A stretch of 64,000 nt of DNA from Epiperipatus broadwayi (Eukaryota > Animalia > Onychophora). The stretch lies in assembly GCA_028023455.1 (NCBI GenBank), contig JAQFVV010000001.1, forward strand, positions 34,286,001-34,350,000. The letters are read 5' to 3'. Below the pieces are notes generated by a model, which saw only the letters and a program-made list of their open reading frames with translations, was not told the DNA's origin and did no database searches. Shown here one piece after another: positions 11,194 through 52,663 of the stretch (position 1 is its first letter; every line of letters begins with the position of its first letter). Position numbers and translations under genes: made by a program.

Positions 11194-13315
11194 GTGTGGT
11201 TTGTTATGCCCCCCCCCATTTCATTTACTTGTATAATGTTGTATAAGAGGAAGCAATAGATATGACTACACATTCAACTAATATAAAATATGTTTGAAAA
11301 AGCAAATATCATCTTATTCAAAGACTTTGCTTTGTAAAATGACAGAGTTGATTACTAAACATGTCTGGATCAATAATCAGTTCAGTTTTTTTATTTAAAT
11401 ATGAGGTGTACTAACTTAACAATTTCATTATTTTTTATATATTAACAGTTCATTATGATTTACAGATATTTAAAAAAATCACATCATCCATTGTGTCAAA
11501 GTCCAGTTATTTACTTAACTCTATTTCAAAAAATATATGAAATAAAAATAATTCCATGTTATTTATTTTAGGACATGCAGTTCTCTCAGAGATCGAGCTT
11601 ATTTTTTATGATTGTTTAAAAAATTACCTCAAAAAACAATTGCATTTATTTTTTTTGCATATTTTTATTTTAAATATTTTTTAGAAATAAAAAAGAACCA
11701 GCTAAAATACCAATGTAAATTATTTCTAAGCTCATATTTTGCAACACTTATAATAAGCTATTTATAAATAACATATACTTACAAAGAATAATTATTGAAC
11801 AATTTAAAGTAAAAAAAAAAAGATAAAATATGTTCTTTCTAACATACATGCATCAAAAAACTTTTTTTTTATTATAAATATAAACAATATCATTAAAATA
11901 TAAAATGTCATATATTAGATTACAATCATTCAGCAGATAAAAGTTGGGATTTATACAAAACAAATAAAACTAATTGCTTCATGTAAAATGTATTCAAGTA
12001 TAATCTTGTGATCCCTAATAATCCCTGTGAAAGAATTGCACTTAATTTTTTTTTTGCATTATAAAATGAAAAATTCATTTAGAATACTTTCAAAATCAGA
12101 AATTATTGATGGTTGCAATTCTTCCAAACCTTAAAAAAATCTGCAAAATACTTTTTTTTTTATGTAATAAATTAAATTATCAATTTATTTATTTTTTTAA
12201 AAAAAAATGTATCCAAAATAAGAACAAATCATTTATTCATGAAATTTTCAGGAAATAAAAATAAATTTGTTATTGCTTATGTTTCTGAGATTACTATAGT
12301 TTCAACAATAGTTTATGATAATGTGTTAGGAAAACTGAAAAGTTATTGTCTTTGTTGATGAAGGATTTAAACCAACAGAATATTCAATAGATAATCAAAC
12401 AGCTTTGAGTCTATATAATTAAATTAATCAAAAATTTAATTAAAAAACATGTTGGAGATGGTTATGTAGATTTAGAAATTAATAGACAAAAAAACTGAAG
12501 GAAGAGCTACATCTACCATCACATTTCTATCAGAAATTTAAAAACTAATGGGAGTCGGGGTGTCTTCTGAATCAAGTGTTTAATTATTCACAAAATGATT
12601 AAGCAGTCAAATCTTTAAAGACATGGACATAATAAAAAATGTTTAAATTCATTACTTGATGATTACAAAATGTATTAATCCCACACACACAATTTGTCTT
12701 TTAGCATACATATTAGCATTAAACATATAAATTTTAGATTATTCACCAATATTGTTTTCATGATTTTTTTTAAAGAGTAAATATTTAATATATAGTTATC
12801 TTTTTTACTTTTATATTTTGTACACAATTGAGAATCAATAATAATTAACTGTAACTGTTTTTAAACAATTTTAATTTTTTGTAAATGAGTTTCTTTATGT
12901 AAATTGTAGTTTATGATGTGATTCAAAAAAGTGATTAGAAATTAGAAGCTTCACTACCATGGTTTTTATATTGGCATTTCTTTTGAAATTAGACATTTAG
13001 CATAGAATTCCAAATTTTTATATTTTGTATACAGTTGATAATATGGACAAATCTTTTTTTAATAATTCAGTTTGTTTAGAAATGCTTTTTTGTATGTTAA
13101 TTATACTCTGTGAGATGTAAAAGTAACTCGATATTAGATTACCATTTTTGTTTTTCTATTATCATTTGTTTTGAAAATAACTGTTTAGCATATGATTGCA
13201 AACTTTTTACTTTTATGTATTATATTCATGTTTGGGAATTAGTATTTATTGCTGATCATAGCATGCAGGTAAATATACTTTGATATGGTTTTTTTTATTA
13301 ATTCGGCCTTTTTTC

Positions 13316-14033
13316 ATAAATAAATGCGATAGCAAGGACCTCTACAGGTGTTTTAACCACAAGCTTACGCTATGGAAGAAAAGAGGGGAACCCTTCTTTA
13401 CTTCAACCTACTTTCTATTTAAATAGGTGAAGCTGAAGCGGTTAGATCTGCGAGCGTGAAGCTATTCAATACTTCACTGATTAAGTCCACATTTCTTATT
13501 ACACATTAATACTCGCGAAATCTTTCGATTTACAACGAGTCAATGGAAAGATTTTATAGTTAGAAATCTATTACAGTAATTTAAAGTTGTAATTATCGCA
13601 TTTATACGCATATTGTCGAGGTTATAGCCTCAGTAAATATTACTTACGTAATCAATGTGCGTTTAATAAATTTATAATTACAACTTTAAATTACTGTAAT
13701 AGATTTCTAACTATAAAATCTTTCCATTGACTCGTAAATCGAAAGATTTCGCGAGTATTAATGTGTAATAAGAAATGTGGACTTAATCAGTGAAGTATTG
13801 AATAGCTTCACGCTCACAGATCTAACCGCTTCAGCTTCACCTATTTAAATAGAAAGTAGGTTGAAGTAAAGAAGGGTTCCCCTCTTTTCTTCCATAGCAT
13901 AAGCTTGTGATTAAAACACCTGTAGAGGTCCTTGCTATCGCATTTATACGCATATTGTCGAGGTTATAGCCTCAGTAAATATTACTTACGTAATCAATGT
14001 GAGTTTAATAAATTTATAATTATAAATAAATGC
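13316..14033. mobile_element. Young non-coding insertion: 12-bp TSD, ~275-bp inverted arms, spacer repeated directly (342-bp period)
   Basis: TSD ATAAATAAATGC at 13316-13327 and 14022-14033. Arms 13320-13596 and 13674-13947 are reverse complements with 3 substitutions and one 3-nt indel. 13594-13680 is repeated at 13936-14022 with 1 substitution. Confidence 0.9.
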
Positions 14034-20306: not shown

Positions 20307-21204
20307 TCACTGCGGTGGATTGAATTCGCAGATATGTTGCAAAATAGAAGTCAAAGGCTCATCTTTGAAGCATCGCCTCCACATAAATTCAGTTAAATAG
20401 GAATCCAGATGTCTAGCTGTCCCTCTGTGCTTTTTGTTCCGCCATTTTACTAAACCCCACAACCTTTCTATATTTTGAGTGTGGACTCTGGTTGATGGGT
20501 CCACAAAATTGTACATGTGGTGGTTGACTTGAAGGTGATCGTATCTGGCCTTCTTTAATTCTTTATTTTTATAACCTTTCCAGCAATCGCTGTAAATCGT
20601 AGATCCTTCCTCTACATTTTCTCTGATGGTTCGCATCAGAGTGGACGCGGTTCTGTCTGAATGGTTATCACAAAACATTGATCCGTCTCTCTGCAAACAC
20701 CACCAAATATCCACTGCTGGGGGAGTACTCTGCCGGTGTTATTTTTACATTTTGAAAAAAGACTTTTGTCTATTTTGACGACCCTGTTAGGGCCTCCAAT
20801 TTTCTTTTTTCCTTATGTAACAGTCTCCAGGTGCACATTTCGCGGAGATAATTATTCCAATCAACCGCTGTTTTACTGGCGATTTTTAATTGCTCTTCAC
20901 AAAATTGTACCGATGTCAATTCTCTAGACCAACTATATGAATCTAACCGCAGTAGCAAAACTGATTCTGGATCCTTCACACCAAGTCACTTTTCTGATTG
21001 CAATTCTTTTCAAACAATCTTTAAAATTACATTGCCATTGCTTCTCATACTTATTAATATGTATATAGTCATTTCATGGCCTTTATCACAACATTTTCCA
21101 CTCGGGATGATTCCATAAGTCTAGAAGAATGCAATTGCTTTCTCTTCGGAAAATGGTAAGTTCCATAATTTAATATCTTTCTTTGGTTTTTCCTTTTCTG
21201 ACAT
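20307..21204 (-). pseudogene. Merlin (ISXO2/IS1595-like) DDE transposase pseudogene
   Basis: From ATG 21204 (MSEKEKPKK..EEKAIAFF*) through TAVDWNNYLREMC, KIGGPNRVVKIDKSLF, QWIFGGVCRET, STIYSDCWKGY, HLQVNH, FVDPSTRVHTQNIERLWG, HLDSYLTEFMWRR to stop 20307. Several stops and frameshifts. These motifs are characteristic of the DDE_Tnp_IS1595 domain. Confidence 0.9.
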
Positions 21205-49729: not shown

Positions 49730-51050
49730 TTCACAGGATTTGTGGATAAATTTTATCTTTTAAATTTGTCTGCACATCTTTCGGAGACATAATTTTAAAT
49801 ATATTGCAAACTTACAACAATAGTCAAATATGTTTAAAAATACATATATACAAGCAACAAAGATTACAAATTATAAAATTATTATATAAAAGCCTTTTTC
49901 GGCAAATTATGTTTTTTTGCCCTTTTCAATATGTCTCCACGATTTAAAGCACATACAACGACATCTATATAAACACATGAGAGAAGATAAATAAACAAAT
50001 GGATATCTGACATGATCTATTATGTGATTTTCCCCCCCCCTCAATTCTACTACAAAATTACTCTGTTATATATATTGAATGGATATATATTCACATATAT
50101 TAATTAATTAACTATCCATTCTTTATCCATTAACCACTTATTATTTAACTTAATGGATGTTTTGTATATATTCATACAGTTGTTTTTATTATACATGATG
50201 TAGTTTGTTTCATATATTTTACGTCTATTAACATTTTTAATGTAATCAAGAACACTTATATTATCAATACAATTTATTTTATGTCCATACTGCAAATAAT
50301 GAACATATAATGCAGATCTATCATCTTTCCTAGCAATAGCATCATTGTGTTCTTTAGCTCTTTCTCCCAATTGCTTTGACGTCTGGCCATAGTAAATCAT
50401 ATTACAAAAATTACATCTAATTTTATAAACCATTCCTCTCTTATATTTTATATCATCTTTCATTCTACAATTAGTTATATTTATCCAAATTTTTGCTATT
50501 AGCCCATCCCACGTTAATGTTTTTATCTATATAATTTTTACTTTTTTTATTTAATATATTATATACACTAGGCAAATATGAAATTTTTATCCACTTCTTT
50601 TGTTTATTAGTCCTACATCTATTATTATTTGTGCTATTTACTCCATGTTGTGAAAATATATTGTCAATACTATGCGCTGTATATCCATATCCCATATATG
50701 TTTGTTTAAATTTATCCTTCTGTAACATAGCAATATTTCTATCTGTATTAAATCTATCGTTCTTATATTTAAAATTCTTAATTACACTCATCTTTTGTAT
50801 CCATGGTTGTTTTGAATCAATTGATATAATTTTCTTTAATTTATAATCTTTAATAAAATGCTTAATTATAATCATTATTTTGATTTAAAATAATTTCAAT
50901 ATCTAAATACCTTATTTCATTATCAATTTCTTTCATAGTAAACCTAATATTATCAACATTATTATTAAATTGTTTGTATAATTTATATATTGCCCTCTTA
51001 TTACCAATTATCAAACTATCATCTACGTATCTAAAATATATGAAGGTCAA
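49730..51050 (-). mobile_element. 5'-truncated Penelope-like element (RT C-terminus + GIY-YIG endonuclease + 3' pseudo-LTR region)
   Basis: Three consecutive minus ORFs (50862-51062, 50471-50875, 50104-50463): YFRYVDD, IRFTMKEIDNEIRYLDI, QPWIQKMSVIKN, GMVYKIRCNFCNMIYYGQTSKQLGERAKEH, SALYVH, RRKIYETNYI. Confidence 0.92.
49884..49938 (-). ncRNA. Degenerate minimal hammerhead-like motif in the Penelope 3' region
   Basis: Minus strand reads ACATA-TTGAAAA-G-GGCAAA-aaaacataa-TTTGCC-GAAA-AAGGCTTTTA-TAT: 6-bp stem II abutting GAAA, core two substitutions from CUGANGA. Confidence 0.4.
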
Positions 51051-51052
51051 TT

Positions 51053-51165
51053 GAGTTGACAAAGATTATATTGTGGAAATGGGATGGAGCAGATTATGGG
51101 AAAACTTAGGGTGGACAATGGTAAAGGAAGGTAAAGTGGCTAGCAGGTTTCTCTGGGAATAGCTG
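51053..51165 (+). repeat. Copy 1 of an unassigned dispersed repeat (opposite-strand homolog at 53336-53448)
   Basis: Translation DKDYIVEMGWSRLWENLG..EGKVASRF aligns with copy 2. Confidence 0.6.
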
Positions 51166-51399
51166 CTGAGAGATTCCTGACTCCATTTAAGGAGAAGTCA
51201 CAACACATCACATCATAATGAGACAAATTTACATTGAAACATGCCTAAACATCACACCAGATTATAAACTCACTGTAACATATTTATATGTATGTGTTTG
51301 TTCAAAGTTTCATAGTTTTTCCAAAATAATTTATTAAAGATTACATTATTACATTAAAGGTTATTTGGTACATATTTTGTTCAAAGTGTTTTCTCATTC

Positions 51400-51732
51400 C
51401 TTCATTTGTTTTTCCCAAATTTGAGTCTGTTTTCTCTTTTTCGGAGCATCTTGCTATTGGTTGGACCATGGAGAGGATAAATCCAGCATGTCCCAAGTCA
51501 TGGTAAAAATAACCTCAGGGGTTATCAGGCTATCTCTTGTTCTTGTTTTCTTTATATTGTTCAGCATGAAGTTAATGGGATTAAAATTTTGATGATTAAA
51601 TACTAGCTCACATCTAGTAATCCACAATAGATGATCAAGAATTAATGAGAGTCTCATTTCTGGGTATGATCCTTTTCTGATACATTCTTTAAAATTAAAT
51701 AATTTAGATTGATTTGCCTTGATCCGACTCAT
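51400..51732 (-). mobile_element. Probable L1/Tx1-type LINE ORF2 C-terminal fragment
   Basis: ORF 51454-51732 contains ILDHLLWITRCELVFN, like the xxIWxxRNxxVF motif near L1/Tx1 ORF2 ends. Confidence 0.45.
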
Positions 51733-51850
51733 TATTTATCTACTATTTTGTCATATTTCGTTTACTAATAAATGGTTTTAATAAAAACAAATTATAAAAA
51801 ACCAATTAACACATTTTCTTATCATAATCAAATATTTTTATAAAATAAAT

Positions 51851-52663
51851 TTAATGAGATCTTTGTGCTTGTTTCGAACAACATAATTTTTTGAAATTTG
51901 GTTGAAAAAATGTGAGGTATACCCTTAAGTTTACAGCTGCGTTCAATCTGTTTCGATACTTATTTTTTAAAAAAATATATGAAGAAAAAGCTCTTCCTAT
52001 TAATTCGTACTAGTAAACGGTAATAATAATTTAAGAGCTTTCTCAGAAAGTTGTTCATATTCTTTAATGTGTAACCAAAAATTAATTAGATTGTGTCGTT
52101 TGAATTCTACTTGTAAAGTTCTGTCACATGATAATTCTATTAAATTTTCTTTATTCTTTATTGATAATGATGTAGCTTTTTCTAAATTTTCCGCATAGAA
52201 GGGGTTTGAAATCCAATTATCATTTGTGTTTTCGGGTTTTGGAAAATATTCCATGAAAGACAATTGTAATCCTGTTAAATGTGCTATTATATTTTCTTGT
52301 ATATCTTGAGACAGACTAACCTTATTTTCAAACAAAAAAATATGTAGAGTTTTGAATACTTCCAGTTGATTGTTTTCGATACTTATATATATATATATTA
52401 CTGTTTACAAAAATCTAATTTCTTAATCATACTTTCAATTTTATCATTAACATTAAAGATCGTTATTGACTGTACATATTAACAACTTTACTGTATAATA
52501 TTATTAATTAAAATAATTTTTATGAATTATAAGAAAAAACCTTTCTATGATATTTTTATGATTTAATTTTTTTTTTATGTCCACCATTATTGATTATTTT
52601 TCGTGTACCACCAACCAGCAACTCGTGTACCATGGTACACGTACCACAGGTTGGGAAACACTG
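51851..52663 (-). mobile_element. Internally deleted hAT Charlie/Buster element (5' TIR + transposase C-terminus)
   Basis: Minus strand starts CAGTGTTTCCCAACCTGTGGTAC at 52663. ORF 52000-52335 (WISNPF..LIELSCDRTL..FWLHIKEYEQLSEKALKLLLPFTST) plus a frameshifted tail KYRNRLNA..LRVYL..QPNFKKLC..KQAQRSH* (stop 51851) match the FAM200/ZBED5/Buster dimerisation domain. 3' TIR not found. Confidence 0.85.

Follow-up and report, generated by a model that had tools for sequence, protein, structure and literature searches.

A 342-nt non-coding repeat family of the onychophoran Epiperipatus broadwayi with the insertion footprint of Penelope-like elements

Background

Within a 64,000-nt stretch of the Epiperipatus broadwayi genome (assembly GCA_028023455.1, contig JAQFVV010000001.1, positions 34,286,001 to 34,350,000 of the forward strand; hereafter the window, meaning the whole stretch analyzed) lies a 706-bp insert in which a short non-coding sequence occurs both in tandem and in inverted orientation between the two copies of a target-site duplication (TSD). 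Which enzymes could have generated such an arrangement, and from what kind of template? An earlier note, made from the letters alone, had interpreted it as the twin-primed retro-insertion of a dimeric or circular RNA, with Penelope-type or RTE enzymes as candidate partners. Here we address the question at the level of both the individual insert and the repeat family to which it belongs, and compare the two with the published insertion products of Penelope-like elements (PLEs) and other retroelements.

Architecture of the insert

We numbered the repeat unit q1-342, corresponding to window positions 13674-14015. The TSD, ATAAATAAATGC, is exact at 13316-13327 and at 14022-14033; between its two copies lie, in this order, the inverted arm, a unit that is only partial and one complete unit of 342 nt. 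The inverted arm (13320-13596, minus strand) is the reverse complement of q274 to q1, with 97.8% identity over 277 nt; it aligns in two blocks, 13320-13533 with 13734-13947 (214 nt, 99%) and 13535-13596 with 13674-13735 (62 nt, 100%), and three substitutions and a 3-nt indel separate the arms. At the inversion junction a 3-nt TAT microhomology (13594-13596) can be read in the sequence, and here begins a 5'-truncated partial unit (q263-342; 13594-13673, plus strand) that is joined head-to-tail to the next unit and was recognized as a direct repeat (13594-13683 with 13936-14025, spacing 342 nt, 98% identity). The full unit (13674-14015, plus strand) is non-coding, with 33% G+C, and departs from the majority sequence of the family at seven positions. 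It is followed by a terminal ATAATT (14016-14021, plus strand), which represents q1-6 of a further unit and places the 3' end of the insert at about q348-349, in the class of 'long' 3' ends whose mode across the family is q349 (see below). The layout given in the earlier note, a TSD around inverted(A)-B-A-B in which A plus B makes up the 342-nt unit, is reproduced coordinate by coordinate.

At the left boundary, the last 8 nt of the TSD copy, ATAAATGC, are the reverse complement of GCATTTAT at q267-274 and can be assigned to the inverted arm as well, from which it follows that the true TSD length of this insert is 4 to 12 nt. The outer end of the arm, q274, is among the less frequent end positions. 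The inner end of the arm and the 3' end of the insert, which the earlier note had regarded as precisely coincident, are indeed near each other, but they differ in position (q1-4 versus q6-7). Given that the arms are only 1.1% apart, as against a family median of 4.2% within insertions, and that merely 7 of 342 positions depart from the family majority, the sequence indicates a relatively young copy, younger than most others.

The insertion site is TTTTCATAAATAAATGCATAAC, and the right flank is unique in the genome. Searches with both flanks found neither a second allele nor an empty site in the assembly, and none of the low-coverage contigs built from public runs crosses the site. The 18,588 contigs of the assembly equal 3 x 6,196, with very large contigs beginning at C1, C6197 and C12393, a numbering which suggests three concatenated sets; no second copy of the locus was found in any of these three apparent sets. 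The left flank contains a 70-nt direct repeat (12962-13031 and 13150-13219, spacing 188 nt, 74% identical) and matches dispersed genomic repeats at 66-83%. Elsewhere in the window, an ORF fragment at 20307-20714 (minus strand) matches the IS1595/ISXO2-like DDE transposase domain (E = 2.7e-14) and is probably the relic of a eukaryotic Merlin-type DNA transposon.

A dispersed family with two preferred 3' end sites

A first look through the 5.6-Gb, very AT-rich assembly (the window itself has 26% G+C) returned 2,791 candidates for the 342-nt unit and 835 for its 72-nt 3' end alone, with scored copies being 93-97% identical to the unit of the window. The unit belongs to a dispersed family of hundreds to thousands of copies. 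For the statistics of ends and TSDs we used 40 independent insertions with flanks, 18 of which are direct and 22 palindromic, with head-to-tail multimers of 1 to more than 3 units per arm. The direct copies comprise one to three head-to-tail units, begin anywhere from q150 to q332, and end at q345-367 in 15 cases and at q315-321 in the remaining 3. In the palindromic copies both outer ends are of the 3' type and the inversion point is unique to each copy. Twenty of these 22 have one 'long' outer end (q345-362), and the partner end is a 'short' one (q305-321) in 16 and lies at q274-292 in 4, the window copy being among the latter. Overall, 57 of 62 3'-type ends lie inside just two intervals, q345-367 and q305-321 (binomial P about 2e-44), the short interval accounting for 20 of the 62; the two sites, centered around q349 and around q311-315, are about 35 nt apart. 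The other 5 of 62 ends, including q274 of the window copy, lie outside both sites. In a second sample of 40 copies, the sole criterion was that the long 3' end be matched completely, and only coordinates were used; at least 10 of these 40 have an inverted partner no more than 200 nt away. A short-ended arm is present in 7 of these 10 palindromes, while 3 of the 10 have a full long-end match on both arms, and hence the asymmetry of the ends is a strong tendency and not a rule.

The TSDs of the 40 insertions are 4 to 20 nt long (median 9), most of them between 8 and 16 nt. Duplications of at least 12 nt are present in 37.5% of the copies, as opposed to 0.19% of 1,560 controls in which flanks were paired between different loci and the shared boundary string was counted. 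The flanks are more AT-rich than the loci (21% versus 27.5% G+C), and microhomology of 1-5 nt with the target is usual at both ends, although such AT-rich sequence inflates apparent microhomology. In four small public runs from two organisms, contigs carry the family at high depth (library type unspecified), and their break points from the unit, at window positions 13646, 13984 and 13988 (q311-315) and at 13680-13691 and 14026 (q7-18), are the two end sites seen in the 40 insertions. None of the runs that hold the unit is recorded as RNA. Comparison of masked flanks recovered no conserved sequence adjoining the unit in other loci; a larger composite element was considered and rejected, as all that the masked flanks have in common is unrelated repeats, whose distances are not consistent.

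The earlier reading, in which a non-coding template of more than one unit, arranged head-to-tail, gave rise to the insert with a 5' inversion, is borne out by a family of high copy number that forms tandem multimers and shows variable truncation and variable TSDs. Its further inference of a circle or of defined processing from the coincident ends is not supported by the comparison, because the inner ends at the inversion points are scattered across the 22 palindromes and it is the outer ends that are regular instead. Sequence divergence has little to say on the form of the template: with medians of 4.2% between units within an insertion and 4.8% between insertions, the comparison cannot separate a circle from a tandem master copy. 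Among the 5' ends, q321-332 (window 13652-13663 and 13994-14005) is where 4 of about 17 direct copies (L002, L030, L052 and L051) start, in a sample that is small and biased; a TATA-like TATAG (q292-296) precedes these starts by about 25-30 nt, and a TCAATG motif lies at the starts themselves. This start class adjoins the short 3' end class at q305-321. We posit that q321-332 may be a transcription start, and the preferred 5' end in its TATAG/TCAATG context suggests that the RNA is linear, starts at a defined point and has about 27 nt of terminal redundancy with the long 3' end.

Motifs and coding content of the unit

Each of the two end sites is associated with a small hairpin. The short site coincides with ATTAC-TTAC-GTAAT (q308-321; 13981-13994, plus strand, with a second instance at 13639-13652), and the long site is spanned by ATTACA-12 nt-TGTAAT (q4-27; 13677-13700, plus strand), which is present in the minimum-energy fold. 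An AATAAA at 14007-14012 (plus strand; second instance 13665-13670) lies 10-25 nt upstream of the long end class. The RNA of the unit is more structured than shuffled sequence (z = -3.18). The commonest ends, q311, q315, q349 and q362 (for example window 13984, 13988 and 14022 minus 1), lie just before the C of TTAC; like the location of both sites within ATTAC/GTAAT hairpins, this is a lead only, since AT-rich flanks bias boundary calls toward G/C.

We found no meaningful ORF in the unit and no A-tail or microsatellite tail in the copies of the family. ARAGORN detected no tRNA-like head in it, so that the unit lacks the feature by which a tRNA-derived SINE is recognized, and a TTTT run inside the unit counts against multimers made by Pol III. 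A scan for bacterial-type promoters was set aside as irrelevant to an onychophoran genome.

Searches for ribozymes

Tandem non-coding repeats of this size are described in animals as hammerhead-bearing retrozymes (see below). Rfam models gave no ribozyme family in the insert region at E up to 10, no ribozyme in two further loci of the family and six PLE loci at E up to 1, and none across the whole window at the gathering threshold; miRNA-like Rfam hits were dismissed as hairpin or palindrome artefacts. A strict hand-built hammerhead scan returned nothing anywhere and was judged too strict, for which reason a relaxed scan for the core was used. With it, the hammerhead core CTGANGA (CUGANGA in RNA) was present in 0 of 98 unit segments on either strand. 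The same scan did detect a positive control, an unrelated repeat flanking L007 and L013 that carries CTGAYGA, a helix II of 6 bp and GAAA. This control repeat (L013:321-664 on the minus strand, L007:2467-2562, L024:2978-3331, L045:2730-3080 and L054:831-1024) is more G+C-rich, has a helix II of GTGCTG/AGCAC followed by GAAA and then by an AT palindrome, and shows no similarity to the 342-nt unit. The earlier description of the unit as retrozyme-like yet without a hammerhead is upheld by these searches. The relaxed scan likewise found no core in the sampled autonomous PLE loci, and a hammerhead-less dependant would therefore fit the PLEs of this genome.

Penelope-like elements and their insertion footprint

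PLE insertions are known for strong 5' truncation and partial tandems, often with an inverted 5'-truncated copy immediately upstream and a 'tail' of 30-40 bp at one end only; head-to-tail multimers and the one-sided extension of about 35 nt are considered hallmarks of PLEs that are absent from non-LTR elements (Craig et al. 2021, PMC8557442). Biochemical work with a purified PLE protein has shown that it cuts and extends both DNA strands and prefers AT-rich DNA, that reverse transcription starts internally on the RNA at two adjacent sites whose spacing equals the tail, and that insertion in vitro can proceed without the hammerhead (Frangieh et al. 2024, PMC11167929); the Anolis PLE initiates in vitro without homology, in contrast to the 1-5 nt of target microhomology usual at the ends of the 342-nt family. 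Every element of this footprint is reproduced by the 342-nt family, in which we observe 5' truncation, tandems, an inverted arm, a mostly one-sided tail, two discrete start sites whose spacing of about 35 nt matches the published extension, and variable TSDs in AT-rich DNA. The family departs from autonomous PLEs in having no ORF, in its length of only 342 nt, and in lacking similarity to the autonomous PLEs that we sampled.

The genome is rich in potential donors of the required enzymes. A search with a GIY-YIG model returned 10,241 candidates. In the sampled PLE loci, which show tandem and inverted arrangements, frames stay open for 800-901 aa and have GIY-YIG as their C-terminal domain; by the intactness of these frames the sampled autonomous PLEs are potentially active. 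The locus L057:2220-7087 is a complete autonomous insertion with an 875-aa frame and a 10-nt TSD (AATAAATCAA), and it has the same layout as the 342-nt family, with a 5'-truncated arm in inverted orientation, a partial copy in tandem (period 3,144) and a tail, here of 60 nt, at one end only; no hammerhead core was detected in it. As to a specific partner, BLAST of a dimer of the unit against 24 PLE loci (out of about 10,000 copies) and the window gave no significant similarity, the best matches having E of 0.002 or worse, being AT-rich and lying in the wrong orientation. A recurrent 63% match at q303-388 was rejected as compositional, being inside PLE ORFs and away from their termini. The window also has a Penelope-like relic of its own at 50104-52335 (minus strand), with neighboring short ORFs on the same strand; its ORF at 50104-50463 has a weak GIY-YIG match (E = 0.002, below the Pfam cut-off), and the relic shows no similarity to the 342-nt unit. 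Of the two candidate partners named in the earlier note, Penelope-type enzymes emerge as the best, based on the PLE footprint and the abundance of PLEs, while RTE is unsupported and the unit resembles nothing else in the window.

A proposed mechanism of mobilization

Based on this footprint, we propose as the likely explanation that the insert in the window is a copy of a non-autonomous, non-coding retroelement for whose mobilization PLEs supply the reverse transcriptase and the GIY-YIG endonuclease in trans. A PLE protein would bind a longer-than-unit transcript in trans, and its endonuclease would cut the two strands of an AT-rich target at points offset by roughly 8-16 nt. Reverse transcription would then begin inside the RNA at about q349 or about q311-315, each within an ATTAC/GTAAT hairpin. 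Where both DNA ends prime, two converging cDNAs would be joined at an arbitrary point (TAT in the window copy) to yield a palindrome; where one DNA end primes, the outcome would be a plain 5'-truncated tandem copy. The multimeric state might be regenerated by tandem master copies, by template switching through the redundancy or by rolling-circle copying. In the window copy the second priming would have taken place at q274 and not, as is usual, at the short site, probably through pairing of the top-strand end ...ATAAATGC with 8 nt of the RNA. As an individual event this copy resembles L1-type twin priming, and to that extent the earlier proposal of twin priming is plausible; it does not extend to the family, whose outer ends mark two sites about 35 nt apart, the signature of the PLE 'tail'.

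Alternative explanations

LINE machinery also gives rise to variable-length duplications, 5' truncation and, by L1 twin priming, 5' inversions. Hence we also considered a SINE-like family mobilized by a LINE (of the RTE or another clade) through target-primed reverse transcription, with L1-style twin priming and with multimers derived from tandem masters. The window copy, with 8 nt of microhomology at its second priming site, would sit well with such an origin, as would the 1-5 nt microhomologies common at the ends. Nevertheless, we regard it as improbable: the ends of the inverted arms cluster within q305-321, a discrete site, instead of following arbitrary microhomologies, the family has neither an A-tail nor a microsatellite tail, the unit is unlike anything else in the window, and its multimers and one-sided extension of about 35 nt are PLE hallmarks (PMC8557442). 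An origin at the DNA level, be it a fold-back element or MITE, a satellite-like array carried by a Helentron (such arrays are known in oysters, PMC7492417), reintegrated extrachromosomal circles or a local replication or assembly artefact, could account for a palindromic structure with tandem sub-repeats, but is very improbable in the face of TSDs of 4 to 20 nt, of arm lengths and inversion points that vary, of many copies with variably truncated 5' ends and no inverted arm, and of the lack of conserved sequence next to the unit in other loci. In particular, the fixed termini and fixed-length TSD of a fold-back or MITE transposon were not found in the 40 insertions, which also counts strongly against the DNA MITE alternative raised in the earlier note, and a local artefact is ruled out by more than 20 unrelated loci that share the architecture of the insert.

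Another explanation, for which a PLE could still be the mobilizer, is a circular RNA of unit length, processed in retrozyme-like fashion by a ribozyme or a host enzyme and copied by rolling-circle reverse transcription. The precise unit junctions in multimers and the high self-pairing of the RNA speak for it; its size, low G+C, tandem layout and TSDs of more than 4 bp match the animal non-LTR retrozymes (PMC7229834), and the 5' end class at q321-332, abutting the short 3' class at q305-321, could mark a cleavage site. Yet no CUGANGA core is present in 98 units although the control hammerhead was detected, there is no Rfam ribozyme match even at E up to 10, and the preferred 5' end points to a linear RNA. 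Furthermore, the scatter of the inversion points means that the near-coincident ends of the window copy are not general, and it is autonomous PLEs, not circles, that share the tandem layout. Taken together, nothing in the family requires a circular template, and we consider one rather unlikely. A related scenario, which we hold to be unlikely too, is a hammerhead-less analogue of retrozymes in which the RNA is cut, and perhaps circularized, near q321/322 by an undescribed ribozyme or protein, or in which the redundancy of about 27 nt (q323-349) allows retrovirus-like strand transfer leading to multimers.

Relationship to known systems and implications

The 342-nt family has close counterparts among several described elements. 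With the animal non-LTR retrozymes (Cervera and de la Pena 2020, PMC7229834; Li et al. 2026 preprint, 10.64898/2026.07.22.740005) it has in common tandem non-coding units (150-450 nt in the retrozymes) of low G+C, duplications of more than 4 bp, a self-paired RNA and co-occurrence with PLEs, together with a proposed dependence on them, but the type I hammerhead that defines retrozymes is absent from the 342-nt unit. Recent proposals derive the retrozymes of animals themselves from PLEs. Non-autonomous Chlamys elements such as MRC1 (Craig et al. 2021, PMC8557442) provide another parallel, being hammerhead-less PLE dependants with pLTRs and multicopy head-to-tail insertions; however, they reside in green algae and have 3' ends in common with known autonomous families, whereas the 342-nt unit has an animal host and no match among the sampled PLEs. 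Hammerhead-less, non-autonomous PLE dependants with head-to-tail multimers have, then, already been described in algae. Turning to LINEs, the family resembles L1 in combining a 5' inversion, within a single insertion bearing one duplication, with priming of the second strand on the RNA; it differs in having no poly(A), in the clustering of the second start at q305-321 and in its multimeric template. The twin priming of L1 itself was reportedly set out by Ostertag and Kazazian in 2001.

In light of these comparisons, we regard the 342-nt family as an ordinary, hammerhead-less PLE parasite and not as a new kind of RNA replicon or a new class of element. Its interest lies in being a compact natural record of how PLE machinery would integrate RNA, with two start sites, priming by both DNA ends and multimers all preserved in its copies. 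As the unit has neither an ORF nor a hammerhead, it would be a directly usable substrate for in vitro PLE assays on initiation sites. It also indicates that searches keyed to the hammerhead miss part of the load of PLE-dependent short repeats in genomes of this kind.
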